From Anthoceros angustus (Eukaryota; Plantae; Anthocerotophyta), in the NCBI GenBank assembly GCA_010909165.1, contig MU008174.1:620001-684000 (forward strand): a DNA stretch of 64,000 nt, given 5' to 3'. Below, in pieces: positions 3,038 to 52,822 of the stretch. The notes beneath the pieces are model-generated. The model saw nothing but the letters and a program-made list of their open reading frames with translations. It searched no databases and had not been told where the DNA came from. Position 1 is the stretch's first letter, and each line of letters opens with the position of its first letter. Both the position numbers and the translations under genes were made by a program.

Positions 3038-3187
3038 GGCTTGCAGGAGGACACCTGAAACTGGGCATGCATCATGCAGCAATGATCAGATCACCAGTCC
3101 ATCGTCTTGAGCCTTTAGTACGTCTGTCGATTGCCTGCAACGTGTCTGGGCCAGCAAACCTTATCGTTATGCTTCCATATCCGTCCT

Positions 3188-21411: not shown

Positions 21412-21527
21412 TGCCTTGAAACAACTCAGATACGCACATAGTCTAAGTCGTCAGTTCAAGTTTATTGGGCTGTTCCCTGCCTGAGATAATCGGGCCCAAC
21501 AGACGCAGAACGGGCATAGGTACAAAT

Positions 21528-22904
21528 GGCTTAGGCCAAATGGACACATTTATAAGAACGCCGTTCGTAAGCATCCTGCGCTTAGATCGGTACTTATATG
21601 GGGTCCTTAGAAGGGAGTGGATGCCCTTGGTGCAAGTAGCTTGGTCACACCATAGTACAAGCTGTCAAAGTATCCAGTCCATGACAGGAAAATTCTATCA
21701 AAGTGGATTATAATATATTTTTCTTCTTCTACACCATTATGCCTTAGGTCGGTACTTAAATGGGGTGCCTAGAGGGAGTGGATGCCCTTGGTGCAATAGC
21801 TTAGGCACACCACGGTACAAGTTGTTAAGTATTAAGTCGCATGATGGAAAATTTCGTCCAAGTGGATTATAATAGATTGTTTTTCTTCGTCTCCTTATAA
21901 TCTTGTGATTATAACAACCTTGTGATTATAACAACATATGCCGGTCCTGATGCTTCAATCTAGCCATCCACTACTTACTAAGTACAGCGATCCTCCACAA
22001 GGCGGCAACAAGTACGGCGATCCTCCACAAGGCGGCGACAGTAGGTGACGGCATCTTCCTCTACCTCCGTGGTTTGCAGGCCGTTTATTCCTCCTGCATA
22101 TGACATTGTGGGTGCAGTAGGTGACTTTAGGTAGGGAGCTTAGTTGCTCCTCTCCACCTCGACCCCCGGTCCCCTTTGGTTGTCCCCTCCTAGATGGGCT
22201 TTTCCCATCGTTTTTTCACCTCAATAAAAACCTCGTGCTCACTAGGTACTAGACTAGGCATTTATGTGTAACGCGCAGGGGTGGGAGGGCGATAACATAT
22301 TTTGGCATAAATGCACTCTCCAATGTTCGGTACGTGGGTATATTTTTGCACACGAGGATGCTAATTTATTGGTAGGTATATCCTTCCCACACGTAGAGTG
22401 CACTGTTTAATATTCACTAAAGATTGAATGGAATTTTAATGAGGAAGGGGAATAGGAGATGGGAGAGTTTATTTGTCGAATTAGAATGAAACTTTATTGA
22501 GGGAGGAGAGATGGGCTGGGGCTCTTAGAGGGATGGGTAGAGCCCATCTACTAGAGGACACATGGGCAAATATGTATCAGTATTTGGTTTCCTCTTCCAT
22601 TTGTAACTTTTATGTAGATATGGAAAAAATTATATAAATTATACAGTTTTTTATCACTCTAGTACAAACCATAAGTTTAAGAGAAGGCGCGTGATGACAA
22701 GAAGAAGAAGAAGAATTTTATTTAAGTCCACTAAGGACGGATTTCCGTCATGGGATTTGGTACTTAACAACTTGTACATGGTATGCCTAAGCTAGTTGCA
22801 CCAAGGGCATCCATTCCCTTTACGCACCCCATCTAAGTACCGATCCAAGCGCAGGATGCTTAATAACCACGTGCTTATAAATGTGTGTCCATTTGGCCTA
22901 AGCC
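21528..22904. mobile_element. Non-autonomous element with ~170-bp terminal inverted repeats (MITE/foldback-like)
   Basis: ggcttaggccaaatggacac...gatgcccttggtgcaa...catgac at 21528 is the reverse complement of 22735-22904. An extra direct copy of the arm lies at ~21745-21885. No ORF and no clear TSD. Confidence 0.65.
22045..22240 (+). repeat. Dispersed repeat ending in ctcaataaaa; inverted copies at ~41405-41595 and ~58165-58270
   Basis: Shared core ttttattgag..aaaa.cgatgg.aa...ggtc.aggtg.a..gagca.ctaa....c.tacctaaagt.acc when read on the opposite strand. Confidence 0.7.
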
Positions 22905-22915
22905 ACATACGAAGA

Positions 22916-34836: not shown

Positions 34837-37800
34837 GTGTCAACGGTGCAGGAGCTTCGCGACTTGTTGAGCAGTAGAACTAGAGAGTGCGTTTGGGATG
34901 GCGCGCAGCTTTCCCGTATGGATGAGAAAGCACAGGCCTGCCAGCGTGATGGACATCATTCTCGTGATTCTCGTGCATCTGGACCTTGCAAGTCTGTTGT
35001 AACTCCATTCCGTGTTTGGAGATTTGATTTTTTTGTTCAGGAGGTGCTTGTAATTATGGAGCTCAGATGTGGGCAAGCTTGTACTCTTTGTTTTGACGAG
35101 ATTGATCCTTGCAGGATGAAGGAGGATTCGGGAGTTGAAGTTGGAGTTGGAGTCTGGAGTAAATTATCTGAGGGGGGACAGGTTAGTGAGTCCGTCCAAG
35201 CCTTGGAGCTCCTGGTGCGAAAAGATGAATATGTTCCAGATTCTGTTTTCTATCGGGTTCTCAAGGGGTGCATTGCGAGAAAAGATCTGGTTGCTGGCAG
35301 GCGTCTCCATGCTCTTGCTCTTAAAGCTGGTTACGTTTCAAACACGTTCTTGGCCAACAACCTTATCCGGATGTATGCGTCTCTGGGGAGGTTGGACGAA
35401 GCAACAGCTGTCTTTGATGCACTGGCGGCACCAAGCAAGAAGTGCATGTGGGCTTCCATCATTTTAGCACATGCTGAAAATGGAGAGCACTTGCAGGCCA
35501 TTAAACTGTATGAGCAAATGCGACGTTCAAATGTGGATCCTGATAGCCATGTAGTTGTGGCAGTCCTCAAGGCGTGTGTCCGCGCAGCGGATTTGGCAAC
35601 TGGCAAGCAGGTTCATGCTGATTGGTTAGGAAGCGGGACCCAGCCTAGTCTGTTCGTGGGCAGCAGCCTGGTGGGCATGTATGTGAAATGTGGCAGCTTA
35701 GATGATGCTCGCTTAGTGTTCGACAGCCTGCCGGAAAGAGATGTGGTGATCTGGACTGCCATGATTGCAGGGTATGCTAACCAGGGGCTTGTTCAAGAAG
35801 CTCTCACGCTATACGTGCGTATGCAGAAAGAAGGCTTCAGTGTAGCAAATCACTTCACATTTGTTTGCCTACTCAAGGCATGTGCAAGTGCGGGGGCTTT
35901 GCGTGAAGGGAAGCAGCTGCATTCACACATTCAGGAAAGGGGTCTGGAAGCTTATGTGTTTGTTGGCAGCAGCTTGGTGGAAATGTACGCAAAATGTGGG
36001 AGCTTGGAAGATGCACGGAGACTGTTTGATCGATTGCCAATCAAAGATACATCAACATGGAATGCCATGATTGGTGGTTATGCACGGCATGGACATGGTC
36101 AAGAAGCCATTTCACTCTATGCAAGCATGCAACAGGTGGGCCTGAATCCTGCTGATCAGGTGACAGTTCTGTGTCTCCTGAAAGCTTGTGCAAGCATCAG
36201 AGATCTAGAAAATGGGAAGGAGCTCATATCCCAGCTTCAAGTAAGAGGACTGGAAGCTGACATGATGGTTGGCAGCGGCCTGGTCAACATGTATGTGAAA
36301 TGTGGGAGCCTAGATGATGCCCAGAGGGTGTTTGACAACCTGCCCACAAGGGATGTGGTGACGTGGACTGCTATGATTGCAGGTTATGTAGAGCACGGAC
36401 GTTTTGAAGAAGCCCTGTCTCTGTACAATTGTATGGAAGATGGAGCTTGCATCCAACCTGATCAAGTTACATTTGTGTGTCTCCTAAGAGCATGTGCCGG
36501 CGTCAGAGCTCTGAACCAAGGGAGGCTGCTTCACTTGAAAATCCGAGATCGGCAACTGGAAACTGATCTGGTGGTCAGTACCAGCCTGATAGACATGTAT
36601 GCGAAATGTGGCAGCTTAGAAGAGGCTTACGGAGTTTTTGACAAGGTAAACAGAAAAGATTTGGGAATTTGGAATACTATGATCACAGTGCATATGCAAC
36701 ATGGGGACTGTCAGGGAGCACTTGCTCTATATGCAAGGATGCGACAGGAGGGAACGACTCCCGACCCAGCTACCTTTGTATGCCTTCTGCAAGCTTGTGC
36801 CAGCACTGGCGCTCTGCATGATGGCAAGGAGCTTCATTCCGAGATTCAAGGTCAAGGGATGGACGTTGATATGGCAGCAGGCAACAGTCTGATAAATATG
36901 TATGCCAAATGTGGCAGCCTAGAAGATGCTCGCAGAGTATTTGACAAATTGCCCTCAAAGGATGTTATAACATGGACAACAATCATTGCTGGATATGCTC
37001 ATCATGGCCTAGGTGAGGAAGCCCTTTGTCTTTATGAGGACATGCTCAAGGAAGGCTCAAATCTGGCTGATGACGTGACGTTTGCATGCCTTCTGAAAGC
37101 ATGTGCAAATGTTGGAGATATCCAACAGGGGCAGAAGCTTCATTCTGAGATCCAGAAAAGAGGACTGGAGGGTGATGTGGTTGTGGGCACCTCTCTTGTG
37201 GAGATGTACTTAAAGCATAGAAAGTTTGAGCATGCCCAACATGTGTTTGATAGGTTGTGCTTGAAGAGCGTGGCTGCTTGGAATGCAATGATCACAGGAT
37301 TTCTTCAGCATGGGCTCGACGAGGAAGTCCTCAATCTTTATACAAGAATGCAAGACGAGGCTATCACCGCACCCGATCATGTTACATATCTGAGCATCCT
37401 AAAAGCATGTTCCAGAACTGGAAATTTGCGGCAGGGTCAGCAACTTCACTCGCAACTTCAGCACAAGGGATTTGAAGCTGATCTTGCTATAGGCAGTAGC
37501 CTGGTGGACATGTACGCTAAATGTGGCAGTGTAGAGGATGCTCGCAGGGTGTTTGACAGATTGCCCACAAAAGATGCAGTGACGTGGAGTTCCTTGATTG
37601 CAGGATATGCTCAGCAAGGACTTGGTCAGGAAGCTCTAGCGCTTTACAAAATGATGCAACAGGAGGACCTGCCTCCAGCAGATCCTGTTACATATGTGTC
37701 CCTCCTAAGAGCGTGTGCCAGTGTTGGGGCTTTGCATCTGGGAATGCATCTTCACGCCGAGATTCGGGAAAGAGGACACGAAGTTGATGCAGTGGTTGGC

Positions 37801-38793
37801 AACAGCCTGGTGGACATGTATGCAAAATGTGGCAGCTTACAGGATGCTCGTAGAGTGTTCGACAGATTGCCCAAACCAGATGTAGTGACATGGACTGCGC
37901 TTATAACTGGTTATGCCCAACACTGTGGGAGCCACATGGCAATCCAATGTTTCGAAGAGATGGTGCAGCACGGGGTTGAGCCCACTGATGTGACTTTTAC
38001 CTGTCTTCTCGCAGCATGCAGTCATGAGGGCCTAGTGAACCCTGCCCAGCAGTACTTCAAGATGATGGTGGAGGACCATGGCATCAGCCCCAGTGTTCAA
38101 CATTACAGTTGCATGGTCGACATTCTTGGGCGATCAGGCCACCTGGACGAGGCTGAGATGATGCTGACACATCTGCCTGTAAAATATTCTTTGGGGTGGA
38201 GAACTTTGCTAAATGCTTGCAAAATCCATGGTGACATAGAACGAGGACAGCGATGTTTTGACCATCTTGTTGAGCTAGAACCTGAACACTCTGCTGCATA
38301 CACGCTCTTGGCAAGTACGTATGCAACCGCTGGCAGGTGGAGAGATGCAGAGAGGATAGAAGACTTGAGAAAAGCGGCAGGTGCTTCCAAAAAGCCTGCA
38401 AGGGCATGGATTGAGGTGAACAAAAGACTTCAAACATTCATTGTCGGGGAAGAGAGGGATGACATCTCTTCCAAGCTCGAGAGTATGAATCTGCAGTTGG
38501 TGCAACAAGGGGGCCACGTTCCACACACAGGACTGGTACTCAAGCCAGTCTCAGAAACAGAAAAAGAAGACTCCTTGTGTGGTCACGCTGAGAAACTAGC
38601 ACTGGCGTACGGAATGCTTAACACTGCCGATGGCTCCACTCTCCGAGTCACCAAGAATCTTCGAATGTGCAATGACTGCCATAATGGGACCAAGATTCTG
38701 TCCCGGATAGAGAAGAGAGAAATCATTGTCCGCGATGATCATCGTGTTCATCATTTTGTGAATGGCATCTGTTCATGTGGGGATGCACTGTGA
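34837..38793 (+). CDS. PLS-class PPR-DYW:KP protein (candidate U-to-C editing factor), C-terminus DAL
   Basis: About 30 PPR motifs (10 PLS triplets), E1/E2, KKPARAWIE, CGHAEKLALAYG, KNLRMCNDCH, HHFVNGICSCGDAL*. The true start is uncertain; the first ~90 aa may include UTR or intron. Confidence 0.92.
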   Translation: MSTVQELRDLLSSRTRECVWDGAQLSRMDEKAQACQRDGHHSRDSRASGPCKSVVTPFRVWRFDFFVQEVLVIMELRCGQACTLCFDEIDPCRMKEDSGVEVGVGVWSKLSEGGQVSESVQALELLVRKDEYVPDSVFYRVLKGCIARKDLVAGRRLHALALKAGYVSNTFLANNLIRMYASLGRLDEATAVFDALAAPSKKCMWASIILAHAENGEHLQAIKLYEQMRRSNVDPDSHVVVAVLKACVRAADLATGKQVHADWLGSGTQPSLFVGSSLVGMYVKCGSLDDARLVFDSLPERDVVIWTAMIAGYANQGLVQEALTLYVRMQKEGFSVANHFTFVCLLKACASAGALREGKQLHSHIQERGLEAYVFVGSSLVEMYAKCGSLEDARRLFDRLPIKDTSTWNAMIGGYARHGHGQEAISLYASMQQVGLNPADQVTVLCLLKACASIRDLENGKELISQLQVRGLEADMMVGSGLVNMYVKCGSLDDAQRVFDNLPTRDVVTWTAMIAGYVEHGRFEEALSLYNCMEDGACIQPDQVTFVCLLRACAGVRALNQGRLLHLKIRDRQLETDLVVSTSLIDMYAKCGSLEEAYGVFDKVNRKDLGIWNTMITVHMQHGDCQGALALYARMRQEGTTPDPATFVCLLQACASTGALHDGKELHSEIQGQGMDVDMAAGNSLINMYAKCGSLEDARRVFDKLPSKDVITWTTIIAGYAHHGLGEEALCLYEDMLKEGSNLADDVTFACLLKACANVGDIQQGQKLHSEIQKRGLEGDVVVGTSLVEMYLKHRKFEHAQHVFDRLCLKSVAAWNAMITGFLQHGLDEEVLNLYTRMQDEAITAPDHVTYLSILKACSRTGNLRQGQQLHSQLQHKGFEADLAIGSSLVDMYAKCGSVEDARRVFDRLPTKDAVTWSSLIAGYAQQGLGQEALALYKMMQQEDLPPADPVTYVSLLRACASVGALHLGMHLHAEIRERGHEVDAVVGNSLVDMYAKCGSLQDARRVFDRLPKPDVVTWTALITGYAQHCGSHMAIQCFEEMVQHGVEPTDVTFTCLLAACSHEGLVNPAQQYFKMMVEDHGISPSVQHYSCMVDILGRSGHLDEAEMMLTHLPVKYSLGWRTLLNACKIHGDIERGQRCFDHLVELEPEHSAAYTLLASTYATAGRWRDAERIEDLRKAAGASKKPARAWIEVNKRLQTFIVGEERDDISSKLESMNLQLVQQGGHVPHTGLVLKPVSETEKEDSLCGHAEKLALAYGMLNTADGSTLRVTKNLRMCNDCHNGTKILSRIEKREIIVRDDHRVHHFVNGICSCGDAL

Positions 38794-39310
38794 GACGGAT
38801 GCTGGCAATAAAACTGTTCGTCTAGAGATCTCGGACTCTTGCCAGAAAGTCCCCACTGCAGCCGTCGATACCAACAGATGCCGCGTACAAGCTTCCCACA
38901 GTTTCAGGCAGAAGAGCCCAACATCCCCTGATGATTTCGCAAATTACACCTCTTCGTTCTACGAATCCTTATGCTGTGATCTCTCATTTTGGGTTGGGTC
39001 ATTTTGTGAATGGTATCTGGTATGTGGGGATGTACTGTGAGATGGGATGCCTGTAATTTAACTGCTAGGGGACTCTTAGAATTCTTCCACCCAACATGGT
39101 TTTACAATATGTCGAACATAGTAGGAAATGGTTGTCAATAATCTCTGTTGTGTCAGAGCGCTCATTGGCCATTATACATATTCCATTTCTCACGCATCTT
39201 CGCTAATGGGATGCGTTTGCATTTCTCGTCACACTTGTTACAATAGCCTAGGGATGGCTGTCAGTATTGCTTGTGGACCCATTACCAGTACGAGGAGATA
39301 GGTCCCTCAA

Positions 39311-39416
39311 GGCTCGCATCTCGCACAAATTAACCAAGCGAGTGGCTCGCATCTCGCACAAATTAACCAAGCGAGTCACAAATTAACCAAGCGAGTTTGT
39401 GGCAGTCGCTTGGTTA
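39311..39416. repeat. 33-bp tandem repeat (2 copies plus a 20-bp partial) followed by an inverted copy of its core
   Basis: ggctcgcatctcgcacaaattaaccaagcgagt x2; taaccaagcga...tcgcttggtta hairpin. Confidence 0.85.
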
Positions 39417-39830
39417 GATGGACACACATTTATAACACGCCTCGCCCCTATTAAGCATCCTGTTCTTAGGTCGGTACTTAGATAGGGTGTCTAGAGGAAA
39501 TGGATGCCCTTGGTGCAAGTAGCTTAGGCACAACATATGTACTACAAACACAACGTAGTACAAGTTGTTAGGCACAACATGGTGCAAGTCGTTTAAGTAC
39601 CAAGTCTCATGGTACAAGTTATTAGATGCAACATGGTACAAGTTATCAAAGTACCAAAGTCCCATGATTGGAAAAATTCTTTTCTTCCAATCACACACTC
39701 TTGGCCTCATTTGGGACATGGACGGCCTGTCCTGATTTGGGTATATCAGCCCGTTCGGCTTCTTAACCCAGTGCCCACGGACATACCATTTGTGTGCCTT
39801 GTAGCGACCCTTGGGTGGGAAAAAAATTAA
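39417..39830 (+). mobile_element. Solo copy of the TIR-arm repeat family of 21528-22904
   Basis: atggacacacatttataa...aagcatcctg...ggtcggtacttag...ggatgcccttggtgcaagtagcttaggcac...gtcccatga. Shares taacccagtgcccac with the 41.9-42.6 kb copy. Confidence 0.65.
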
Positions 39831-39994
39831 CAATCAACGACAGCAGGAGGGAACAAGCATCCGGAGGGGAGCTTGAACCTCAGACATGTTGCGCATTGCG
39901 CATGTCTGCCGGATCTAGCCAAGTGAGCTACTCCGAGTGGAATGACAGGAGGTACCGTCTAGTAATCTTTTTGGTGTAAGACATACTTCCTCCA

Positions 39995-40500
39995 CGAAGA
40001 AGATATCGTGAAGCTGCAGCACGGGACTGCTGTCTGCTGCTGCATAGACTTCACTCATTCATTTTTCGTCTTCTTCTGCAGCACGGGGAGTACGTGTCGT
40101 TGGGGAAAGTGGAGGCGGCTCTGGTGTTGAGCCCGTTTGTGGACAATTTTACGCTGCACGCAGATCCCTTTTAAAGCGGTGCGGTGGTTTTGGTTGTGGC
40201 GGCTGAGGCGGCTTTGCAGGCTTGGGCTAGGAGGACCGCGGGTGCAGTTTGGGGATTTAGCGGATCTGTGTACAAGTATGGATGCTACGCAGGACGTACC
40301 GGTGCTGCGGTCTTTGGCTCACGCGGGGAAGCGGGCCAAGTTGCAGAGAATCGAGATTCCGACTGGCAAGATTAGGTTGCTGCCTGAGGAATGGACGCCG
40401 GAGATTGGGATTGTGACCGGCCGCCTTGAAGCTGAAGCGGGAGGCTGCGAAGGAGGCATTCGCTAGCATTCTGTATGCGTAGGCTAGAAGAGGAAGGATG
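39995..40500 (+). pseudogene. Inverted, degenerate copy of the LACS 3' end (corresponds to ~47245-47690)
   Basis: (K)DIVKLQHG[insert][18 protein letters not shown]...[20 protein letters not shown]; frameshifts; a 50-bp insert flanked by a 12-bp direct repeat ctgcagcacggg (40014-40025, 40076-40087). Confidence 0.9.
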
Positions 40501-41049
40501 AAGTATTTGGTCATGGACTCTGTTAGATGTTTCAGAGGCGGGATCCGTTTGGAGTGCGCTGCCGAGCTGCCGAGATCGATCCCTTCGGTAAGGATCTTCG
40601 CTCTTGGTCGCTTACTTGACGACCGGGTGTTCTGTCGTGTAATGCTTCGACGCAACTCCCATTTTGTCGTAGCAGGTTTGCTATCCTATGTGGCTGTGAA
40701 CAAGCAGGGATTGAGAACATCTCTATCCTTAATAGCCAAGGCATTGCAAAGCATTACGTAGCATTACCAAGAGTTATCCATGAACGATGTCGTATTGGAA
40801 CTGGCATCTTTCCCATACATTCACGGCTTTATACATTCACAATGATTCTTATTTGAATTGCTATTCACAAGTACACACATGTTGTGAAGTTCTGTATGTA
40901 TCATATTTGAAGTAAAGTAAGCAAAAGAACCAACCTAGCCTGACCTTGACGCCACATGTTAGCAGAGTCGTACTTTATTAGAGCATGGACAACGATATGC
41001 CACATGCTGCTTTCGACCCTCAAAACGTTTCGTTCCTGGGCTGGATCTG

Positions 41050-41240
41050 GAGGACTGCTACCTCACGGATCACTAGCAGTCCTCACGGATCACAGATCGA
41101 TATACCTGAAGGACGGCTACCTCACATATCACAGATCGATATATCTGGAGGACGGCTACCTCACAGATCACAAACCGACTGCTACCTCACAGATCACTAG
41201 CAGTCCTCACGGATCACAAACCGATCGCTACCTCTGGATC
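41050..41240. repeat. Modular minisatellite built on ctcac(g/a)gatcac with embedded hairpins
   Basis: About 7 ctcacNNatcac cores joined by alternating linkers; stems gaggactgcta/tagcagtcctc and gactgcta/tagcagtc. Confidence 0.8.
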
Positions 41241-41854
41241 ATGTAATCACATATCTAGAGAACTGCTACATCATTGATCGACTCGACTCGTCTTGCAGGG
41301 TTCACAGCTCGCTTGGATTGGATTGTTGCACATTCCAAGCATATGGCAGCCCCTTGGCCCGAGGAACCCGGTACGCACAAATGCATTCTTGCCTTCCATG
41401 AGATCATATTTTATTGAGGTGAAAAAAACGATGGGAAGAGCCTATCTAAAAGGGGACAACCTAAGGGGACTCGGAGGTCGAGGTGGAGGAGAGCAACTAA
41501 ACTCCCTACCTAAAGTCACCTACCGCACCCACAATGTTTTATGCAGGAAGAATTAAAAGGCCTGTAAACCACAAAGGTAGAGGAAAATGCGTCACTTACT
41601 ATTGTTGCCTTGTGGAGGATTGCTGTTAAGAGTGCCCGTTGAAGGACAATTCCCGGTCTCGTTCTGTGCCTTCTAAATATGTCATCCAAACATAATCTTG
41701 AAAAAGGGAAAAAAATATTATCAAAATTAACTACATTCACTTTCTTTCCAAATTTTGAAAGAACTGGGGAAGGGCCAACATGGACCTTCCATCTAGCGGG
41801 TAGGAGCCACACGCTCTGACCAACAGAGCTACTCCAGCCGTGCAACCAAGTACC

Positions 41855-42560
41855 TTAGGCCAAATGAAAAGAAATCAATACAAACGGCATAGCATCCATT
41901 GTTACTTGGATTGGGGTGCCTTGAGAGAGTGGATGCCCTTGGTGCTAGTAGCTTAAGTACACCATGGTAAAAATTGTCAAGTACCAAGTCCCATGGCGTT
42001 GGACTTCAATAATATTCTTCTTCCTTTTTCCTCTTCCATAGATCTTTTTTTAATTTTGTTGTTATTAGATGATGAATTAACTCATGGATTATCAATATTA
42101 TATTATCATCTGGCATTAGCACTATGTATGTATGTAGTTGGCATCAAACATACAATGGCACCAAATATGTATGTAGTTGGCATCAAACATTCGATGGCAC
42201 CAAGTATGTATGTAGTTGGCATCAAACATACGATGACACCAAGTATATATGTAGTTGGCATCAAACATTCGATGGCACCAAGTATGTATGTAGTTGGCAT
42301 CAAACATACGATGGCACCATGTATGTATGTAGTTGGCATCAAACACACGGTAACATACTTGAAAACTATCAAATCAAAATCCCAGGGCGAAACTTCAATG
42401 TACACTTTAAAATATCTAATAAGTCTCTGAATTCAATAATAAAGTCTTCAAGCTTCAATATATGCTTTGAAATATCTATAAAGTCTTTGAATTCGTTAAT
42501 CAAGTTTCTGAATTTGACAATCATCAGACCCTTCACCTTAGTAACCCAGTGCCCACCGAC
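41855..42560 (+). mobile_element. Further copy of the TIR-arm family carrying an internal 39-bp minisatellite
   Basis: ttaggccaaatg...gagagagtggatgcccttggtgc...aagtaccaagtcccatgg, then the minisatellite, then taacccagtgcccac. Confidence 0.55.
42127..42350. repeat. 39-bp tandem minisatellite, about 6 units
   Basis: tatgtatgtagttggcatcaaacatacgatggcaccaag at 42127, 42166, 42205, 42244, 42283 and 42322; isolated partial unit near 42733. Confidence 0.95.
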
Positions 42561-42815
42561 ACACCTTCTAGAGTTTTCTCTAACCATTTTTTTCTGGATA
42601 ATTAATTAATTCATTCATTCAAAAGTTAAACATATTATTATTATTATCATCCGCCAGTGGTAATCAATCCGCTCCATGTTCCTCCACATATGGGGGACCA
42701 GGTGGGTAGCATACGTGTTGGCCCCTGCAAGTTTGGCATCAAACACACGATGGCGGAGCTTTGTTGTCTCTTGACGTTAAGAGAAACTGCCTGTGGAAAG
42801 CAAGTTCAAAATCTG

Positions 42816-45653
42816 TCAATTGCGATCCCCACAAGAACAGAATCCATTCACAAAATGGTGAACACGGTGCTCATCTCTAATGATGATCTCTCTCTGTTCT
42901 ATTCTCGACATGATCTTGGTGCCACTGTGGCAGTCATTGCACATACGGAGGTTCTTAGTGACTAGCAAAACTGCCCCATCCGGGGTGTTGAGGAGGCCAT
43001 ATGCCAGTGCCAGTTTCTCCGCATGTCCACACAGGGAATCTTCCTTCTCCCTCTCTGACGATGGCTTCATCACCAGCTCCGTGTGTGGAACATGGCCTCC
43101 CTGTTGCTTCAACTGGAGATTCACGCTGCTCAGTTTGGAATGGATGTCATCTCTTTCGTCCCCCACGACGAAGGAGTGGGTTCTGTTGTTGACTTCGATC
43201 CAGGCTCTTGCCGGCTTCTTGTATGCACCAGCAGATATTCTTAAGCTTTCTATCCGCTCTACGTCCCTCCACATATGGAAGGTAGCATACATGTTTGCCA
43301 ACAGCACATAAGCCCCTGCATTTTGAGGTTCGAGTTTGATGAGACAGTCAAAGCATCGGGTTGCACGTTGGATATCACCGTGTGCTCTGCAGGCGCTCAG
43401 CAGTGACGTCCATCCCACCACATTGCTCTCAAACGGCAAAGTTTCCAGCATGCTTTCTGCCTCGTCGAGGTGGCCTGCCCGACCCAGGACATCAACCATG
43501 GTGTTGCAGTGATGCACACTGGCTGGGATGCCAAAGTCTTGTACCATCGCTCTGAAATACTCCCGAGCCTCATGGACGAGGCCGTTGTGACTGCATGCCA
43601 CAAGGAGACACAGAAAAGTAGCATCGTTGGGCTCGACCCCCTGGTGCTGCATCTCTTGATAACACCGGAATGCCATGGTGCTGTTGCTGTGCTGGCTATA
43701 GCCATTTAGCAGTGCATTCCATGTCACCACGTTCTTTGAGGGTAGTCTGTCAAACACCTTTCGGGCACCGTCTAAGCTTCCACATTTTGCAAACATGTCT
43801 ACAAGGCTGCTGCCGACAGCCACATCTGCTTCCAGCCCCCTTTCCTGTATCTGTAAATGAAGGTGCCTCCCCTGGTTTAAGGCTCCAACACTAGCACATG
43901 CTTTCAGCAGGCAGATAAACGTGACAGTATTGGGTGGTTTTATGGCCTCCTGTTGCATCTGTGCAAATAGAGTAAGGGCCTCCTGGCCAAGCCCATGCTG
44001 CGCATACCCTGCAATCAGAACATTCCATGTGACCACATCTTTCGTTGGCAGTCTATCAAACACTGCACGAGCATCCTCTAAGCTGCCACATCTTGCATAC
44101 ATATCCACCAGGCTGCTGCCAACACCAGCATCAGCTTCCAGTCCTCTTGCTTGAACCTCGCAGTGCAGCTCCTTGCCCTTACTCAACGCTTCAGCGCCGG
44201 AGCATGCATTCAGGAGGCAGACGAATGTAACTGGATCCGCTAAAATCATTCCTTCTCGCTGCATATCTGCATAGAGATCGAAGGCCTCTTGACAAAAGCC
44301 CCATTGAGCATATGCAGTGAGCATAGCATTCCATGTGACAACATTCTTGGTTGACAGGTGGTCAAACACTTTGCGAGCAGCCTCTAGGCTTCCACATTTA
44401 GCATACATAGCCACCAGGCTGCTGCCCAGAGCAACATCAGCTTCGAGTCCCCTTTCCACAATATGGAGATGAAGCTGCTTGCCCTGATGCACAGCTCCAA
44501 TGCTAGCACATGCTTTCAGAAGGGACCCCAATGTCGCAGGATCAGCTGAAACCACACCCTTCTCCAGCATATGTTCGTACAACAAGAGGGCTTCTTGACC
44601 AAGCCCATGCTGCACATATCCCGCAATCATCACATTCCATGTCACGACATCTCTCGTAGGCATCCTATCAAACACCCTGCGAGCTTCCTCTAAGCTGCTG
44701 CACTTAGCATACATATCGACCACGCAGTTGCCAACAGTCACATCAGCTTCAAAGCCTCTTTCCTGAATCTCGAGGTGAAGCTCCCTCCCTTCACACAAGG
44801 CTCCAGCACTGGCACATGCTTTAAAAAGGCAAACAAATGTGACATGATTAGCCGTAGTCTTACTCTCCTGCTGCATATGTCTGTACAACCCAAGGGCCTC
44901 TTTAAAGAGACCATGGTGGGCATATCCCGTGATCATAGAATTCCATGTCACAACATCTCTCGTGCCCAAACTGTCAAATACTCTTCGTGCATCCTCTAAG
45001 CTACCACATTTCGCATACATGTCCACCAGCGAGTTGCCCACGAATACATTAGGCTCAAGCACACTTCTTAGAACATCTGCATGCACCTGCTTGCCAGACG
45101 TTAAATCCACTGCACTCGAACACGCCTTAAGGACTGCTACAAAAATATGGTTGTTGGGCTTCACATTCGACTGCCGCATCTGCTGGTACAGCTGCACAGC
45201 CTGCGCTGGCTGCTCATGTTCAGCATGTGCCAAAATCATGAATGCCCATGAAAAGCTGTCCGGCGCCGTCAAGCTGCTGAACACCAGGGCTGCCTCCTGC
45301 AATTTCCCATGAGCAGCATACATGCGGATGATATGGTTGGCCAAGAATGTGCTCGACAGGTGCCCACTTTTCTTGCTAAGAGCATGCACCCGCCTTCCAA
45401 CCACCAAGCCATTCTTTGCACTGCACGCTTTGAGCACACTGTACAAGAGAAAGTCAGGAACATAAGACTCTTGCCGGACCATCAGGTCCAAAGCTTCCAC
45501 AGCCTCAGTAGTTTGTCCCTCGAGGCATACTTTGCTCCAGCTTCCAAACTCTGATGGCCCATCATCTGGCAGGCACGTCACCTTGTTCCAACTCCTGTCC
45601 CAACAGTTGTCCAGAAAGACGTCACACAAGGCCTCTGGTCGATTTGGTTCCAC
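42816..45653 (-). CDS. PLS-class PPR-DYW:KP protein (candidate U-to-C editing factor), C-terminus DRN
   Basis: Intact intronless 945-aa ORF; 7 PLS triplets, E1/E2, KKPARAWIE, CGHAEKLALAYG, MCNDCH, HHFVNGFCSCGDRN*. Confidence 0.93.
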   Translation of the reverse strand: MEPNRPEALCDVFLDNCWDRSWNKVTCLPDDGPSEFGSWSKVCLEGQTTEAVEALDLMVRQESYVPDFLLYSVLKACSAKNGLVVGRRVHALSKKSGHLSSTFLANHIIRMYAAHGKLQEAALVFSSLTAPDSFSWAFMILAHAEHEQPAQAVQLYQQMRQSNVKPNNHIFVAVLKACSSAVDLTSGKQVHADVLRSVLEPNVFVGNSLVDMYAKCGSLEDARRVFDSLGTRDVVTWNSMITGYAHHGLFKEALGLYRHMQQESKTTANHVTFVCLFKACASAGALCEGRELHLEIQERGFEADVTVGNCVVDMYAKCSSLEEARRVFDRMPTRDVVTWNVMIAGYVQHGLGQEALLLYEHMLEKGVVSADPATLGSLLKACASIGAVHQGKQLHLHIVERGLEADVALGSSLVAMYAKCGSLEAARKVFDHLSTKNVVTWNAMLTAYAQWGFCQEAFDLYADMQREGMILADPVTFVCLLNACSGAEALSKGKELHCEVQARGLEADAGVGSSLVDMYARCGSLEDARAVFDRLPTKDVVTWNVLIAGYAQHGLGQEALTLFAQMQQEAIKPPNTVTFICLLKACASVGALNQGRHLHLQIQERGLEADVAVGSSLVDMFAKCGSLDGARKVFDRLPSKNVVTWNALLNGYSQHSNSTMAFRCYQEMQHQGVEPNDATFLCLLVACSHNGLVHEAREYFRAMVQDFGIPASVHHCNTMVDVLGRAGHLDEAESMLETLPFESNVVGWTSLLSACRAHGDIQRATRCFDCLIKLEPQNAGAYVLLANMYATFHMWRDVERIESLRISAGAYKKPARAWIEVNNRTHSFVVGDERDDIHSKLSSVNLQLKQQGGHVPHTELVMKPSSEREKEDSLCGHAEKLALAYGLLNTPDGAVLLVTKNLRMCNDCHSGTKIMSRIEQREIIIRDEHRVHHFVNGFCSCGDRN

Positions 45654-46034
45654 TGCAAGCCCAGTTCAGCATGAGAATTCCTCCCGCCACCCACAACAGA
45701 ATGTCCCACGCGTAATCGGCACTCACCGGGGCCAGCAACGGAGTCTCGTTGCTCCGCTGCCCCTTGCAGCGATGACAGATGTCTGAACCATTCCTCCATC
45801 TGGCTACAGGATCGTGGTCTGCACTTGAACAGGCTCGACGCAACCGGGACAACTCCGCCCAGACCAACCCTTCTCATTTCACTTGTGCAGCCACTCAGTC
45901 AGCCTCCGCGGACAGAGTTGAGCACAAGGGAGCTCCGATCGTGACCAAGTTCACTTACAACCTTCTCTGATTTTGGACGAACTGGCTGATCTGGCCAACC
46001 TTTCAAGGGCGTTGGTGCTGTGAAGATGTCATTG

Positions 46035-47244
46035 ATGACCCAACCCAACCAAAACGAGCGATCGCATCACAAGGATCCGTAGAACGAAGAGATGTAAGTT
46101 GCGAAGTCATCAGGGGATGTTAGGCCCTTTCGCCTGAAGCTGTGGAAACTTGTTCTTGGACGCGGCATCCGTTGGTATCGAGGGCTGCACTAGGAACTTT
46201 TGGGCAAGAGCTTGAGACTTGACACATTACCAGGAAAAGAGAACAGTTTAATTGCAGGCATCCATCTCACAATGCATCCTCACATGAAGAGATGCCTTTC
46301 ACAAAATGGTGAACACGATGATTATCGCGGACAATGATTTCTCTCCTCTCAATCCGGGACAAAATCTTGGTCCCACTGTGACAAGTCATTGCACATTCTA
46401 AGATTCTCCGTCATTGCACATTCTAAGATTCTTGGTGACGGAGAGTGGAGCCATCGGCAGTGCTTAGCAATCCATACGCCAATGCTAGTTCCTCAGCGTG
46501 ACCACACAAGGCGTTTTCTTTGTTTGTTTCTGAGTCTGGATTGGGTACCAGTCCTGTGTGTGGAACGTGGCCCCCTTGTTGCACCGAACTGCAGATTCTT
46601 ACTCTTGAGCTTGGAGGAAATGTCATCCCTTTCTTTCCCAACACTGAATGTTTGAAGTTTTCTGCCACCTCAATCCATGCCCTTGCAGGCTTCTTGGTCA
46701 CCTGCCGCATTTCTCAGGTCTTCTAGTTGCCAACCACTGCTTCAACTTCGAGTCCTCTTTCCCGAATCTTGGCGTGAAGATGCATTCCTAGATGCAACAC
46801 TGGCACTGGCACACGCTGTTACGAGGGACCCGTATGTAACAGGATCTCCTGCAGGCAGATCCCCCTGTTGCATCATTTTGTGGGCAATCCGTCAGACACC
46901 CTGCGAGCATCCTCTACACTGCCACATTTGGCATACATGTATGTCCACCAGGCTACATTTGGCATATATGTATGTCCACCAGGCTACTGCCTATAGCAAG
47001 ATCAGCTTCTAAACCCTTGTGCTGAAGTTGCGAGTGAAGCTGCTGACCCTGCCGCAGATTTCCAATACTGCAAATCCTTTTAGGATGCTCAGATGTCACA
47101 TGATCGGGTGCGGTGACAGCCTCGTCTAGCATTCTTGTTTAAAGATAAGGGACTTAATCATCGAGCCCGTGCTGAAGAAATCCGGGGCATTCCAAGTAGC
47201 CACGCTCTTCAAGCACACCCTATCAAACACACGTTGAACACGCT
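46035..47244 (-). pseudogene. Inverted, internally deleted copy of the 3' part (37228-39002) of the DAL-type KP gene
   Basis: Colinear match from tgtgtttgatagg.tgtgcttgaagagcgtggct (37240) through the KP-DYW domain and into the 3' flank (gggttgggtcat at 39002), with internal deletions and small duplications. Confidence 0.92.
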
Positions 47245-47267
47245 GCCTCCATCCTCCTTCTGCTTGC

Positions 47268-49379
47268 CTAAGCATACAGCGCTTTCAAGTCGTTAGCGAA
47301 TGCCTTCTTCACAGCCTCCCGCTTCAGCTTCAATGCTGCCGTGACAAGCCCAGTCTCGGGAGTCCATGCCTCAGGCAGCAACCTAATCTTGGTCGGAATC
47401 TCAAACCTCTGCAACTTAGCCTGCTTGCCCGCTTGAGCCAAAGACTTCAGCACCTCCTGCGCAGCATCCTTACTTCTACACAAATCCTTCAGATCCCCAA
47501 ACTGCACCCCGGTCCTCCTAGCCCAATCCTGCAACGCCGCCTCAGCCGCCACAACCAAGGCCACTACAAAGCTGTGGAACGGATCCGCATGCAGCATAAT
47601 ATTATCCACATACGGGCTCACCACCAACGCCGCCTCCACCTTCCCCAACGACACATACTCCCCATGCTGCAACTTCACGATATCCTTCTTCCTGTCGATG
47701 ATCTCCAAGCACCCATCAGGATGAAACCGCCCGATATCCCCAGTATAAAACCATCTCACCCCTGTTGAATCCGTCCTGTAAACCTCCTCCGTCTTGGCGT
47801 CGTTCTTGAAGTACCCCAGAGTCACGCTCGGGCCGCCCACCACAATCTCCCCTCTCGGGCAGGGCGAATCCGACACCCGGTACCCACCTTCCTCCCAATC
47901 CACCAACCTCACATAGCAATGCGGCACCGGCGGCCCCACCCGACCCACAGACGTATCATCCCACTCACTGAACGTCGCTCCCGCGCAGGTTTCTGTCAAC
48001 CCATATCCCTGCCCGATGGGAGCTCCAAAGCACACATTGATGAACCGCTGCGTGTCCCCAGACAAGGGCGCCCCTCCGGACAACAGCCCCCTCACTCTCC
48101 CTCCCAGCACAGCCCGAATCTTCCTGAACACCAGAGCATTCCACAACACCTTCTCCAACCCCCAAGCTCCCCCCCAACTCCCCTCCACAGCCGCCAGCCT
48201 TCTCTTATACGCCAGATTGAACAAACCCTTAGCCAATCCTCCCTTCCCCTCCACCTGCTTCCTCACCCCGTCCCGAACCCGATCCAAAATGGCGGGCACG
48301 GCCGTCATCAGCGTCGGCCTGAGCTCCGACGCGTCCCCCTTGCTCCCCTTCTTGATCTTGCTGCTGGTGTCTGTCAATGTGAGGGGAGAACCATACCCAA
48401 TACCAGCCCCCTTTGCACACATCGTCACCTCCGCCTCCAGCTCCAGCACATGCGCAAGAGGGAGGTAAGCAATGTAGACATCCTTGGGCCCCAGACCAGG
48501 CACCAGCTGCGAAACCCCGCCCACGGTTGCCACGATATTGCGATGCGACATCACCACCCCCTTCGGCATCCCTGTGCTCCCGCTGGTGTACATGATGACA
48601 GCAACATCCGAGTCTGACGGCAGATCGGCCTCTGCCGGGCTCCTTTCCCCCAGGCTCTCCACTCCAGAAAAACCCACTACGCTCCACGCAGAGCTCCGCC
48701 CATTTCTCCCCTCCTGCTCCAGCTCCTGCCCGGGATCCTCCATGAACACCACCCGCTGCACGAAGTGGAGCTGTTCCCCGAGACCCACCAGCTTGGAGAA
48801 CTGCTTCCCGTCGCAGATGATGGTGGAGGCCTCGGTCTCGTTGAGGGAGAATGCGAGGGCGTCCTCGCCCAACGAGGCGTAGATGGTGACCACGGGCGCA
48901 TTCCTGCGGAAGCAAGCCTGGGCTGCGATGAACCATTCCGCTCTGGTTTCCGCGAAGATGGCCACCCGCTCGCCCTTGCCGTGCCCGATGGCGGCCAGGC
49001 CGGAGGAGAAATTGCACACCCGCTGGAAGACCTGGGCGTACGAGAGCCAGAGGTACGGCCCGAGGTGAAGCTTCTCCACCGGGCGCCCGTCCGGGCCTGT
49101 CGAGACCTCCCGGGAGAGCACCTTCCTCGTGCCCAGGAGGCGATGGTGGGCGAACCTCTCCTTGCATGCCTGCTCGAAAAGCGCGGCTATGGTAACCGCG
49201 CCCTCGCTGTCCTCAACCAGGGTGAAGAACCTGCCGTTGCGGAAGGTGATGGCGTCCGGGGGGGAGGCCCCGAGCTCGGCTGCTGGAACTCCCCGCTGCT
49301 TGCGTTTCTTGCTTCCCTGCCGCCACGCCATGGCGGCCGCCAGTGCGGCCGCCACCCCTGCCACCACGCCTGCTGCCAT
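47268..49379 (-). CDS. LACS: Long-chain acyl-CoA synthetase, LACS8/9-like, intronless
   Basis: [54 protein letters not shown]. First in-frame ATG is at 49379 (MAAGVVAG, N-terminal hydrophobic anchor); the 49571 ORF-track start is GTG. Confidence 0.93.
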
Positions 49380-49619
49380 GGGCGGTCTGAATGCCGGAAT
49401 TGGGCCCCGGAATTGGGCTGGAGCCTGCGGTTGTTGCTGCTGCTGGTGGGCTGGGTACGAGGCCGAGGGCAACGAGGATGCGGATGCTAACGGGAACGGA
49501 AGGAAGCAGGCGAGGCCACGGGGGACGCAGAGACACAGGCAGAGGCTGGCACGGAAGCCATGACGCAGCACCAGGCTGCCAGGCTGATTTGCTGCCTTAA
49601 CAAAGCTGCCTTAATAACG

Positions 49620-50150
49620 TCTTACAAGAAAGTAACGCAACAGAAGACAAGCACCCGTCGGGACAAAGAGGCTGCAGGCAGCTTTGACTTTGTAACGTCT
49701 TACAAAGACAAGCTCTAAACAAGAGGCTGCAGGCAGACAAGCACGAGACAAAAGGTTGCAGGCAGCTTTGCTAGTAACTCAACAGACCAGACAAAAGGCT
49801 GCAGGCAGCTTTGCTGGTAACTCAACAGAAGACAAGCATTGCACAAAAGGCTGCAGGCAGCTTTGCTGGTAAAGCAACAGAAGCTAGTAACCCAACAGAA
49901 GACAAGCACTAGACAAGAGGCTGCAGGCAGCCTTGGTGGTAACTCAACAGAAGACGAGCACTACACTAGCACAGGACAAAGAGGCTGCAGGCAGCAAAAT
50001 GTCCGAGCTCCCAAACGTTTTGCTGGGTCCTAGCTCTCCCCGCAGGCAGCTTTGCTAGTAACTCAACAGAAGACGAGCACTACACAAGCTCTGGACAAAG
50101 AGGCTGCAGGCAGCAAAACGTCCGAGCTCCTAAACGTTTTGCTGGTCCCT
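49620..50150. repeat. Degenerate minisatellite upstream of LACS (about 9 copies of gctgcaggcagctttgctggtaactcaacagaagac-like units)
   Basis: gcaggcag core recurs at ~49673, 49724, 49757, 49798, 49850, 49919, 49983, 50041 and 50102. Confidence 0.85.
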
Positions 50151-50239
50151 CGCATAGGGAAGGAACCCTTCCCAACATACACCTACAGCCTTAATCTCTA
50201 TATGGTATGATGATTTTACGCCACTCAACCTAAAATGCT

Positions 50240-51310: not shown

Positions 51311-51360
51311 ATGACGTGACCATGCTGGTCATGATTTACGTGACCATGCATGGTCATGGT

Positions 51361-52822
51361 CACAGTCATGTCTTAACGGTTTGTGTTATCGGTTATGCCA
51401 GTCGTTTGAACAGGTCCATTGTTTAGATCAACTTAGGTCTGTCTTGGTGGCTCCAGTTCAAGTAACAAGATGTTGGCGGACCACCGGTGGGGACTTGCGT
51501 TCGAACCCCAGATGTCACATAGCAAAACGTAGACAAGTAAATCTACAGGAGGTTAATAATTTTCAGCGTCATATCAAATTTCAAAGTGCACCAAAAAAAA
51601 TGTGGAGGTCGCAATAGAACATACGGATGAAGTATCATAAGAAAGGATTAAGAGGTAATGAAGTATCATGAGAACGCATTAAGAGGTAATTAACTCCTGT
51701 TCCTGCCTACAGTCATTGCTCCTCCAAAGCTTTTTGGTGCGTCCCCTTGTTGAACTACTTTTGCTGACGGCCAGCCAGGCATACACCGATCCCGTGTCGT
51801 TATGGTATGGGGTCAAGGGAATGACTTTCCCGTTCGCTTGCAATTTCCTACTCGGCTCACCTATCTTACCCTTTGTCTACGTTCAGCTACTCGCCACAAC
51901 CTCCAGCTGCGCTCGACACCATCTGTCTTCGCCGCCTTTCTCGCGCGGACTCTATAGGGCAGCACCGGAGCACTAGAGCGTAGGGTCGAAGGAACCACCC
52001 CGAGGTTGGATCGTCTGCGCCGATCCGGTCCGCTAATCGCTACACTCACGCCAGATCACTACCTAGTTAAACTGCGCAATTACGCTATGCGTCTCACCGA
52101 TCATCACCGTCACAGTCATGTCTTAACGGTTTGTGTTATCGGTTATGCCAGTCGTTTGAACAGGTCCATTGTTTAGATCAACTTAGGTCTGTCTTGGTGG
52201 CTCCAGTTCAAGTAACAAGATGTTGGCGGACCACCGGTGGGGACTTGCGTTCGAACCCCAGATGTCACATAGCAAAACGTAGACAAGTAAATCTGTGGAG
52301 GTTAATAATTTTCAGCGTCATATCAAATTTCAAAGTGCACCAAAAAAAATGTGGAGGTCGCAATAGAACATACGGATGAAGTATCATAAGAAAGGATTAA
52401 GAGGTAATGAAGTATCATGAGAACGCATTAAGAGGTAATTAACTCTGCCTCGCCATACCATTGCTCCTCCAAAGCTTTTGGTGCGTCCCCTTGTTGAACT
52501 ACTTTTCGACCGAGCATACACCGATCCTGTCGTTATGGTATGGGGTCAAGGGAATGACTTTCCGTTCGCTTGCAACTCGGCTCACCTATCTTACCCTTTG
52601 TCTACGCTCGCCACAACCTCCACAAGGCCGACACCATCTCTCGCCGCCTTTCTCGCGCGGACTCTATAGGGCAGCACCGGAGCACTAGAGCGTAGGGTCG
52701 AAGGAACCACCCCGAGGTTGACTGTCCGCTGCGGCCGATCCGGTCCGCTTAATCACACTCACTCAGGGCCGTATCACTACCTAGTTAAATGCGCAATTAC
52801 GCTATGCCTCACCTATCATCAG
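51361..52822. repeat. ~750-bp tandem duplication (2 copies)
   Basis: cacagtcatgtcttaacggtttgtgttatcgg... at 51361 and 52111; colinear throughout, and the second copy has many small deletions. Confidence 0.92.

Follow-up and report, generated by a model that had tools for sequence, protein, structure and literature searches.

A likely inversion with inverted duplicates of both breakpoints beside two PPR editing-factor genes of the hornwort Anthoceros angustus

Within a stretch of 64,000 nt from Anthoceros angustus (contig MU008174.1, positions 620,001 to 684,000; hereafter the window), two genes for PPR editing factors face each other, and the 3′-end of one of them and the 3′-end of a neighboring acyl-CoA synthetase gene each recur, in inverted orientation, near the other gene. 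How did so reciprocal an arrangement arise? A preliminary description of this DNA read it as the trace of a staggered-break inversion that turned round one member of a former tandem pair of editing genes. We find that the locus is best modelled by one event that combined inversion with duplication, and we consider this model likely to be the correct one.

The three genes (Table 1) were read as open reading frames, without a spliced gene model. PPR1 and PPR2 each contain Pfam PPR families, an E_motif and a DYW_deaminase domain, and their arrays have a PLS periodicity of 306 nt (102 aa). The translations carry the box KKPARAWIEV, with KP and not PG, the motif CGHAEKLA, with HAE and not HSE, and CNDCH. 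DYW:KP proteins are recognised by KP for PG in the N-terminal box, by HAE for HSE at the active site and by a C-terminal triplet other than DYW (PMC9478123). The triplets found here, DAL and DRN, differ from the named DRH and GRP triplets. The DAL-type and DRN-type KP genes of the preliminary description can thus be read directly in the domains, the KP box, the HAE motif and the GDAL and GDRN endings, and judged from sequence the two proteins are putative DYW:KP editing factors with putative U-to-C activity on an organelle transcript. PPR1 and PPR2 are 56% identical in amino acids and about 68% in nucleotides, and were sisters with 99/92 support in a tree limited to 40 sampled C-terminal domains, without the other DYW:KP paralogues of this genome, a placement that fits a former tandem pair. 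The third gene, LACS, matches the Pfam family AMP-binding (PF00501, E 5e-86), and its best database matches are 63–69% identical over 94–100% of the length; many of them bear the name long chain acyl-CoA synthetase 9, chloroplastic, in their sources.

Table 1. Features of the locus, in positions of the window.
Feature	Position	Strand	Description
PPR1	34837–38793	+	Intact PLS-E-DYW:KP editing-factor ORF, 1318 aa, first ATG 34918, ends GDAL (editing function putative)
Block a (B in the model)	37229–39002	+	Last 521 codons of PPR1 and 209 nt of 3′ flank; retained, functional copy (BLAST, boundary alignments)
66-nt templated filler	38999–39064	+	Third copy of the last codons, stop and first flank bases of PPR1; source 38751–38816
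Left-junction filler	39003–39992		990 nt between a and b′
Dispersed element fragment	39405–39690		From an element that has terminal inverted repeats; within the filler
Block b′	39993–40503	+	Inverted pseudogene copy of the end of LACS, with its final ~140 codons, the stop and a further 21 nt (BLAST, tblastn in three frames)
Segment C	40504–46034	-	Single-copy, probably inverted; holds PPR2; between b′ and a′
Segment C, probable ancestral LACS 3′ UTR side	40504 onward
PPR2	42816–45653	-	Intact PLS-E-DYW:KP editing-factor ORF, 945 aa, first ATG 45482, ends GDRN (editing function putative)
Segment C, probable ancestral PPR1-PPR2 spacer	45654–46034
Block a′	46035–47244	-	Inverted pseudogene copy of block a, with 553 nt deleted at 46725/46726
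Right junction	47245–47246		a′ homology stops at 47244, b homology begins at 47247 (both pairs aligned base by base)
Block b (D in the model)	47247–47694	-	3′-end of the working LACS gene; retained copy (BLAST)
LACS	47268–49571	-	LACS9-type long-chain acyl-CoA synthetase; uninterrupted ORF, 767 aa; 703 aa from first ATG 49379

Self-BLAST of 30–54 kb together with a repeat search recovered two inverted repeat pairs, both at almost exactly the coordinates first reported for them. In the pair a/a′, 37229–37803 corresponds to 47244–46726 (77%, E 1e-118 to 1e-126) and 38357–39002 to 46725–46035 (81%, E 1e-173), and the 553 nt that lie between these parts in a (37804–38356) are missing from a′. In the pair b′/b, 40077–40503 corresponds to 47671–47247 (82%, E 1e-109 to 1e-119), with an extra piece of 33 nt (39993–40025, matching 47694–47661). 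The similarity of a and a′ is not noise from PPR repeats, because it lies well over the nucleotide background of the two paralogues (~68%) and because the homology reaches 209 nt beyond the PPR1 stop codon, into non-coding flank. Among 122 proteins tested a′ is nearest to PPR1, and it stems from this very locus, as indicated by the homologous 209-nt flank and by its end, which still reads EDAL and stop where PPR1 reads GDAL. Sequence of LACS, the gene itself aside, is found again only at b′.

Along the locus the order is a, b′, the 5.5-kb segment with PPR2, a′ and b. Written with B, C and D for a, the segment and b, order and strands become B, -D, -C, -B, D, with both spare copies inside the interval that would have been inverted. 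Base-level alignments confirmed how the copies were said to face, a′ turning its 3′-flank end (46035), and b′ its stop-codon end (40503), toward the central segment. A simple inverted copy of the block formed by a and b′ would put b and then a′ on the right, unlike the order observed. The non-genic part of the segment holds dispersed repeats and 39-nt tandem repeats.

From this order we infer an ancestral one of PPR1(+), a 760-nt spacer, PPR2(+), about 2.3 kb and the 3′-end of LACS(-). A first pair of breaks would have bracketed 37229–39002 (block B, within and just past PPR1) and a second pair the terminal 448 nt of the LACS gene (block D), and one old rearrangement would have flipped the 5.5-kb segment 40504–46034 with PPR2, the same event duplicating both breakpoint sequences in inverted orientation. 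Its predicted product, B, inverted D, inverted C, inverted B and D, corresponds to the observed a, b′, segment, a′ and b. The copies attached to genes (a in PPR1, b in LACS) would have been kept by selection and the orphans a′ and b′ left to decay. PPR2 would have kept its upstream spacer and turned convergent with PPR1, and LACS, left with 21 nt of its former 3′ flank, would now read into a sense-oriented PPR1 fragment. Staggered nicks could have been filled in and their ends joined, or replication could have switched template twice. With the segment turned back, PPR2 follows PPR1 head-to-tail at a distance of about 760 nt, which, with the sister placement of the two, supports the preliminary description in so far as it made them a former tandem pair; that the pair began by tandem duplication is plausible on the same grounds.

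At the right junction, which lies 21 nt past the LACS stop codon (47270–47268), two independent homologies end 2 nt apart. Such agreement is predicted if one event made the junction, whereas separate duplications would have to produce it by coincidence. It could also have been produced secondarily. If PPR2 has lain on the minus strand throughout, a gene resembling PPR1 may formerly have stood downstream of LACS or have been copied there inverted, the LACS end may have been copied separately behind PPR1, and a later deletion from the LACS stop to the middle of the PPR copy would have aligned both homology ends. One deletion at 47245/47246 alone would then explain the shared end of homology, but the history as a whole calls for at least three events, each setting an inverted copy beside the other gene, and no copy of the LACS 3′ UTR was found beyond a′. 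Nor did the stretch that follows b′ show homology to the stretch beyond a′, and there is thus no support for an insertion of a′ into an intact LACS 3′ UTR.

Both spare copies are dead pseudogene pieces. Block a′ has 12 frameshifting indels and 2 in-frame stops, and b′ has 6 frameshifting indels, 1 stop and an insertion of 62 nt (40026–40087) bounded by a 12-nt direct repeat. When lineage-specific changes were assigned by means of outgroups, 56 fell in a′ versus 13 in a, and about 33 in b′ versus about 10 in b. Decay of this extent makes it scarcely credible that the inverted copies, or the way the segment is oriented, are products of a chimeric or fold-back join in the assembly: artefactual copies would be near-identical, but the copies here are separated by 10–15% differences, 24 indels and the 553-nt deletion. 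The local sequence quality is moreover good, since the long ORFs of all three genes (PPR1, PPR2, LACS) are intact.

The two repeat pairs are of equal age outside CpG sites, with a non-CpG divergence of 0.093 for a/a′ (n=1018) and 0.106 for b/b′ (n=348; z=0.7), so that the comparison proposed as a check in the preliminary description came out in favor of the inversion that it had suggested. At codon positions 1+2 the values are 0.087 and 0.106. Over all sites the raw divergence of b/b′ is about 1.4 to 1.5-fold that of a/a′ (z about 2–2.8), an excess that is located at CpG sites and gone once these are excluded, and that would also fit slightly different ages or an early gene conversion between a and a′. 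Identity in a sliding comparison along a/a′ is even, and no gene-conversion tract was seen. For a history of several independent events the raw difference of about 1.4-fold is a point in favor, but the equal non-CpG age is left unexplained by it.

The even identity of a and a′ also bears on a route in which the inversion came later than the duplications. Recombination between inverted repeats of 1.2–1.8 kb at a distance of 7 kb can turn round the intervening DNA for as long as the repeats are nearly identical. An inverted PPR1 fragment might accordingly have been inserted in the 3′-end of LACS, with a target duplication of 448 nt, and recombination between a and a′ might have flipped the interval afterwards; reversing 39003–46034 would indeed set b′ beside the filler and a′. 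We consider this route very unlikely, since it takes two events, since the target duplication in the first of them would be unusually long, and since the sliding identity of a and a′ is without an exchange tract. The inversion of PPR2 would still be implied by it, and only the route would differ.

The left junction is untidy. Blocks a and b′ do not abut, the ends of homology at 39002 and 39993 lying 990 nt apart, and the filler between them is only partly accounted for. Its 66-nt templated piece begins exactly at the end of the a/a′ homology and is 83.6% identical to 38751–38816 in a and 83.3% identical to 46308–46244 in a′. A three-way alignment is star-like, with 4 private changes in a, 5 in a′ and 8 in the filler, and the piece, being equidistant from a and a′, appears to be about as old as the a/a′ duplication, as expected of filler copied in the same event. 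Apart from this piece of PPR1 and the 33 nt with which b′ begins, a search of the 990 nt for remnants of LACS or PPR sequence found none, and most of the filler is without a template anywhere in the window. The untidiness would suit several independent events, but these leave unexplained why the homology end of a and block b′ share one left site and why a filler piece is coeval with a/a′. Taking all the evidence together, we think such a history unlikely.

The dispersed element fragment in the filler matches 21527–21855 and 22703–22906 (77–90%) as well as 41903–41996, and its source element, at 21527–22905, has inverted ends of about 204 nt. These relatives, at 21.5–22.9 kb and 41.9 kb, have no counterpart at the right junction, and a search for a repeat common to both breakpoints and able to mediate ectopic recombination found none. 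Neither junction coincides with the end of an element, and a transposon-mediated origin (alternative transposition) was rejected for that reason. The filler further contains perfect 33-nt and 20-nt tandem repeats at 39311–39396. Its 139-aa ORF has no Pfam match, and an Rfam scan of 38800–42900 found nothing; the region 39880–39960 looks tRNA-like by eye, an appearance that was unconfirmed by a tRNA scan of 38000–48000, in which nothing was found.

The templated piece also raises the question of the route by which the favored single event took place. A replicative event (a dupINVdup of the FoSTeS/MMBIR type) would yield the same product at once, and rivals the mechanism only, not the inversion. 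Copying would have run through PPR1 to 39002, slipped back 250 nt, copied 66 nt and switched to the opposite template in LACS, and D, C and B would have been copied backwards before a switch back, after which replication went on. The 66-nt insert, whose template lies 250 nt upstream, sits precisely at the left junction and matches a/a′ in age; it resembles the additional short template switches known from replicative rearrangements, and suits template switching at least as well as staggered breaks. DupINVdup is a recognised class among complex human variants (PMC5338099; PMC6286558). On the other side, most of the filler has no template in the window, and the microhomology at the junctions is no longer scorable, having become unreadable through about 10% divergence since the event. 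Plant end joining, too, yields templated filler. We therefore regard the replicative route as a reasonable possibility that stops short of being probable. The inversion put forward in the preliminary description is thus upheld by the topology, the 2-nt junction, the dead copies and the equal non-CpG age; its staggered mechanism is not, as template switching gives an identical product, and the two cannot be told apart.

Our searches for relatives of the locus returned distant sequences. A metagenome scan with the LACS protein gave 36 loci and no orthologous hornwort locus with flanks, the best being short, cDNA-like contigs of 66–72% identity. A protein word search with the C-terminal half of PPR1 was swamped by PPR repeats; the best relative among the matches listed was 59% identical, and neither close PPR1 orthologues nor the window's own proteins were among those matches. 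The same kind of search with the LACS protein gave nothing above 69% identity, which indicates that the protein database holds no close relative of this genome.

We suggest that the locus most likely represents, cleanly and in a plant, a kind of inversion that is already known, and not a new mechanism. Inversions of this kind are documented mainly in flies, bacteria and human patients (PMC1885836; bioRxiv 10.1101/2025.09.20.677491; PMC5338099), and the present locus would add a cleanly readable one from a seedless plant, on the scale of a single gene and with both breakpoints duplicated in inverted orientation. It would mean that the orientation of a PPR editing gene in a cluster can change without harm to the three genes involved, and that a gene such as LACS can gain a foreign 3′-end; it has no bearing on the mechanism of U-to-C editing. 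The main practical use lies in a′ and b′ as a presence/absence marker for dating the event among hornwort accessions. One might further speculate, although we are doubtful of it, that kilobase inversions duplicating both breakpoints regularly reshuffle the very large tandem families of PPR editing genes in hornworts, this locus being one probable case. Head-to-tail neighbors would in that way become convergent pairs, neighboring genes would receive new 3′-ends, and the locus described here would be the first dissected example in a bryophyte.

The closest known counterparts are the inversions of Drosophila for which the staggered-break model, or "DNA duplication associated with inversion", was formulated (Ranz et al., 2007, PLoS Biol; PMC1885836). 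In these, as here, each breakpoint carries an inverted duplicate of non-repetitive, mostly genic sequence from the other, and the spare copies decay through substitutions and small indels. The duplications in Drosophila measure 46 nt to 1.9 kb with an identity of 88 ± 5%, and six inversions carry duplicates from both breakpoints (PMC1885836); our blocks of 448 and 1774 nt fall inside that range of sizes, and their BLAST identity of about 77–82% lies near the low end of the identities. The Drosophila cases are cytologically visible, lie between species and were checked with outgroups, whereas ours would be a plant micro-inversion of 5.5 kb whose un-inverted state we infer, and unlike them it has one junction with 990 nt of filler that includes a 66-nt templated copy. 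For DFR2 of Fagopyrum, also a plant case, an inverted gene copy has been ascribed to inversion and end joining after a single-strand break with staggered ends (bioRxiv 10.1101/2025.09.20.677491). There only one end was staggered and the duplicate is still a working gene, whereas here both ends are duplicated, neither spare copy is complete or functional, and PPR2, whose orientation would have changed, is not itself duplicated. Human dupINVdup variants have the identical product, an inversion flanked by duplicated breakpoint regions (Collins et al., 2017; PMC5338099), but they are recent, mostly large, detected by read pairs and usually ascribed to replication, whereas the present event appears old and presumably fixed, and is read from decayed copies. 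Ectopic recombination between inverted copies of a transposon or other repeat likewise leaves inverted repeats on both sides of an inverted segment; in our locus, by contrast, no transposon is common to both breakpoints, and the repeats are pieces of two neighboring unique genes, one pair per side, in reciprocal arrangement.

Two PLS-E-DYW:KP editing-factor genes, PPR1 and PPR2, and the LACS9-type acyl-CoA synthetase gene LACS frame a locus with two reciprocal inverted repeat pairs. Block B, here a, is the 3′ part of PPR1 with its flank, and a′ is its inverted copy; block D, here b, is the 3′ end of LACS, with b′ as its inverted copy. The single-copy segment C carries PPR2, and a filler lies between a and b′. 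From left to right the order is B in forward orientation, the inverted copy of D, C, the inverted copy of B, and D, in precise agreement with A B -D -C -B D E. C is adjoined by the b′ end at 40503, the counterpart of the position 21 nt past the LACS stop, and by the a′ end at 46035, the counterpart of the far 3′ flank of PPR1. Had a and b′ simply been copied together as one inverted block, the right side would read b, a′; it reads a′, b. This order, and the facing of both copies toward the segment, had been given in the preliminary description and is borne out by alignments at the block ends; its repeat coordinates agree with self-BLAST of window 30-54 kb to within a few bases. Absent from it were the 553 nt of a that are missing from a′ and the distance between a and b′.

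Features of the rearranged locus and its surroundings (window positions)
Feature	Position	Strand	Description
PPR1	34837-38793	+	intact ORF, 1318 aa
PPR2	42816-45653	-	intact ORF, 945 aa
LACS	47268-49571	-	single intact ORF, 767 aa
a (block B)	37229-39002		
a′	46035-47244		
b (block D)	47247-47694		
b′	39993-40503		
C	40504-46034		single copy, 5.5 kb
Filler	39003-39992		
a/a′ part 1	37229-37803 vs 47244-46726	inverted	77%, self-BLAST
a/a′ part 2	38357-39002 vs 46725-46035	inverted	81%, self-BLAST
b′/b	40077-40503 vs 47671-47247	inverted	82%, self-BLAST
66-nt piece	first part of filler, exactly at end of a		copy of 38751-38816
Transposon fragment in filler	39405-39690		part of dispersed element
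Dispersed element, fuller copy	21527-22905		~1.4 kb; ~204-nt terminal inverted repeats, 81% alike; internal 150-nt tandem units; further fragments at 39405-39690 and 41903-42023
Second dispersed family	22014-22229, 41409-41626, 58163-58365		
LRR protein ORF	25128-26576	-	482 aa; LRRNT_2 domain, leucine-rich repeats
Tandem PPR genes	7-8556	-	three PLS-class genes, E motif at end, without DYW domain
Intact ORF among these	6169-8556	-	795 aa; other two split over several frames
AT-rich stretch	42081-42505		38% G+C, just downstream of PPR2 stop; 39-nt tandem repeat (5.9 copies, 92% matches) and 60-nt repeat
Degenerate repeat array	49662-50153		directly upstream of LACS ORF; 43-70-nt spacing, ~125-nt self-match
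~750-nt tandem unit	51359-52821		51359-52106 and 52109-52821, 90% identical, downstream of rearranged locus

Pfam finds PPR repeats, an E motif and a DYW deaminase domain in both PPR1 and PPR2, and an AMP-binding domain in LACS. The translations of both PPR genes contain KKPARAWIEV, HAE and CNDCH, and end in GDAL (PPR1) and GDRN (PPR2); marks of this type and the C-terminal ends set DYW:KP apart from DYW:PG domains, and DYW:KP genes are known from hornworts, lycophytes and ferns (PMC9478123). Such genes, together with the compact spacing of genes here, suggest that the DNA comes from a hornwort. LACS is 63-69% identical to many plant proteins named LACS9 and by this resemblance is LACS9-like. 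Its ORF has no interruption (703 aa counted from the first ATG), and its 5′ half has 60-66% G+C vs ~48% in the surroundings. A plant LACS relative on metagenomic contig L021 has introns, since its 233 residues span 2.6 kb, and the uninterrupted gene here could be a case of intron loss or a retrocopy.

The a/a′ and b/b′ matches have E-values of 1e-109 to 1e-173, and the identity of a and a′ is well above the PPR1/PPR2 background of ~68%, with homology running 209 nt past the PPR1 stop. An additional 33-nt match between b′ and b (39993-40025 vs 47694-47661) sets the start of b′ at 39993. Within b′, a perfect 12-nt direct repeat (CTGCAGCACGGG, at 40014-40025 and 40076-40087) delimits an insertion of 62 nt that interrupts the copy. 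With no GT at its start, this insertion resembles a product of repair or slippage more than an intron.

At the right junction b′ homology stops at 47247 and a homology starts at 47244, 21 nt beyond the LACS stop codon; a single novel joint would be expected to bring the ends of two independent homologies this close together, 2 nt apart. At the left junction 990 nt separate the end of a (39002) from the start of b′ (39993). The 66-nt piece opening this filler holds the last PPR1 codons, the stop and the first flank bases. In a three-way alignment, a small sample, a has 4 private differences, a′ 5 and the piece 8, a star pattern that suggests about equal dates for all three, and we interpret the piece, on this small sample, as filler made in the course of the event from a template 250 nt upstream. 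Apart from the transposon fragment, the remaining filler matches nothing else in the window, shows no trace of LACS or PPR sequence, and gives no Pfam, tRNA or Rfam hits. Perfect tandem repeats at 39311-39396 (33 nt twice and 20 nt twice) pair with 39403-39416 as small inverted repeats, and must be much younger than the inversion.

The gene-attached copies a and b are conserved and the orphans a′ and b′ are decaying. Besides its 553-nt deletion, a′ has 12 frameshifting indels and 2 in-frame stops, and b′ has 6 frameshifting indels and 1 stop. Polarised with PPR2 for a, and with two metagenomic LACS sequences (L001, L002) for b, changes number 56 in a′ vs 13 in a, and ~33 in b′ vs ~10 in b. The a′ end, EDAL, resembles GDAL of PPR1 and not GDRN of PPR2, and a′ is nearer PPR1 than PPR2 or any of 120 database relatives. 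That the copies differ by 10-15% with many indels, and that three intact long ORFs adjoin them, makes an assembly artefact scarcely credible.

Kimura distances over all sites are 0.10-0.12 for a/a′ (0.166 in the non-coding flank) and 0.158 for b/b′; the respective values are about 0.12 and 0.23 at third codon positions, and 0.087 and 0.106 at positions 1+2, which reflect mostly the pseudogene branch. The raw excess in b/b′ stems from CpG sites: the LACS end, being richer in GC, has more of them, and a larger share of them has changed (0.32 vs 0.22). Very different ages, which the preliminary description held to be fatal to its reading, were not found: at non-CpG sites the values are 0.093 (n=1018) and 0.106 (n=348; z = 0.7), and the two duplications are, by these distances, of the same age within error. 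No obvious conversion tract was seen along a/a′ or b/b′, identity being even in both. From a neutral distance of about 0.1-0.16, and a rate of 5-10 x 10^-9 substitutions/site/year that is purely our assumption, the event might very roughly be dated to some 5-16 million years ago.

We conclude that one inversion event, duplicating both breakpoints, probably produced the locus. Separate inverted duplications followed by a deletion are unlikely, and an inverted insertion with later recombination of a with a′ very unlikely; such histories require two or three events, and turn the equal ages and paired boundaries into coincidences. The inversion that had been proposed from the sequence, with its consequence for gene order, is largely upheld, but the specific staggered-break route is not established. 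The single event could have proceeded by staggered single-strand or chromatid breaks, fill-in and end joining (PMC1885836), or by two template switches during replication, and the product is identical. The 66-nt insert, being templated, is in keeping both with iterative template switching and with templated filler at end-joined breaks, and ~10% divergence since the event has made microhomology at the junctions illegible, so that either biochemical route may apply.

With 40504-46034 reversed, PPR1 and PPR2 would share a strand, the first ATG of PPR2 lying ~760 nt beyond the stop of PPR1, and PPR2 and LACS would converge with their stops ~2.3 kb apart; sequence from 40504 onward would be the former LACS 3′ flank. 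All three genes survive the event intact. The upstream spacer of PPR2 would have moved along with it, being kept because block B was copied; PPR1 would retain 209 nt of its own flank, and LACS 21 nt only before reading into the PPR1 fragment. No functional effect of the rearrangement is demonstrated.

A maximum-likelihood tree built from the last 300 residues of 40 proteins joins PPR1 and PPR2 as sisters (support 99/92) among the relatives listed, a sample in which they are the only paralogues from this genome. This is compatible with, and not proof of, a local duplication, so the tandem origin proposed for the pair is plausible and not established. In Anthoceros angustus about 7.9% of the genes are PPR genes of the PLS class, and almost 10% of the genes lie in tandem clusters (PMC7027989). 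Protein database relatives reach at most 59% for PPR1 and 69% for LACS among the matches listed, and a metagenome scan for an orthologous locus with LACS found none. A 30-nt piece (42664-42693), lying some 120-150 nt past the stop of PPR2, is 87% like PPR2-internal 43249-43278, with a weak tblastn match too; it may recall the PPR1-end copy behind PPR1, or be due to chance. The LRR ORF elsewhere in the window is of the receptor-like protein or kinase ectodomain type.

The arrangement A B -D -C -B D E is the product drawn both for staggered-break inversions (PMC1885836) and for human dupINVdup variants (PMC5338099). The kind of rearrangement is already known, and the present instance is a tidy and instructive one.
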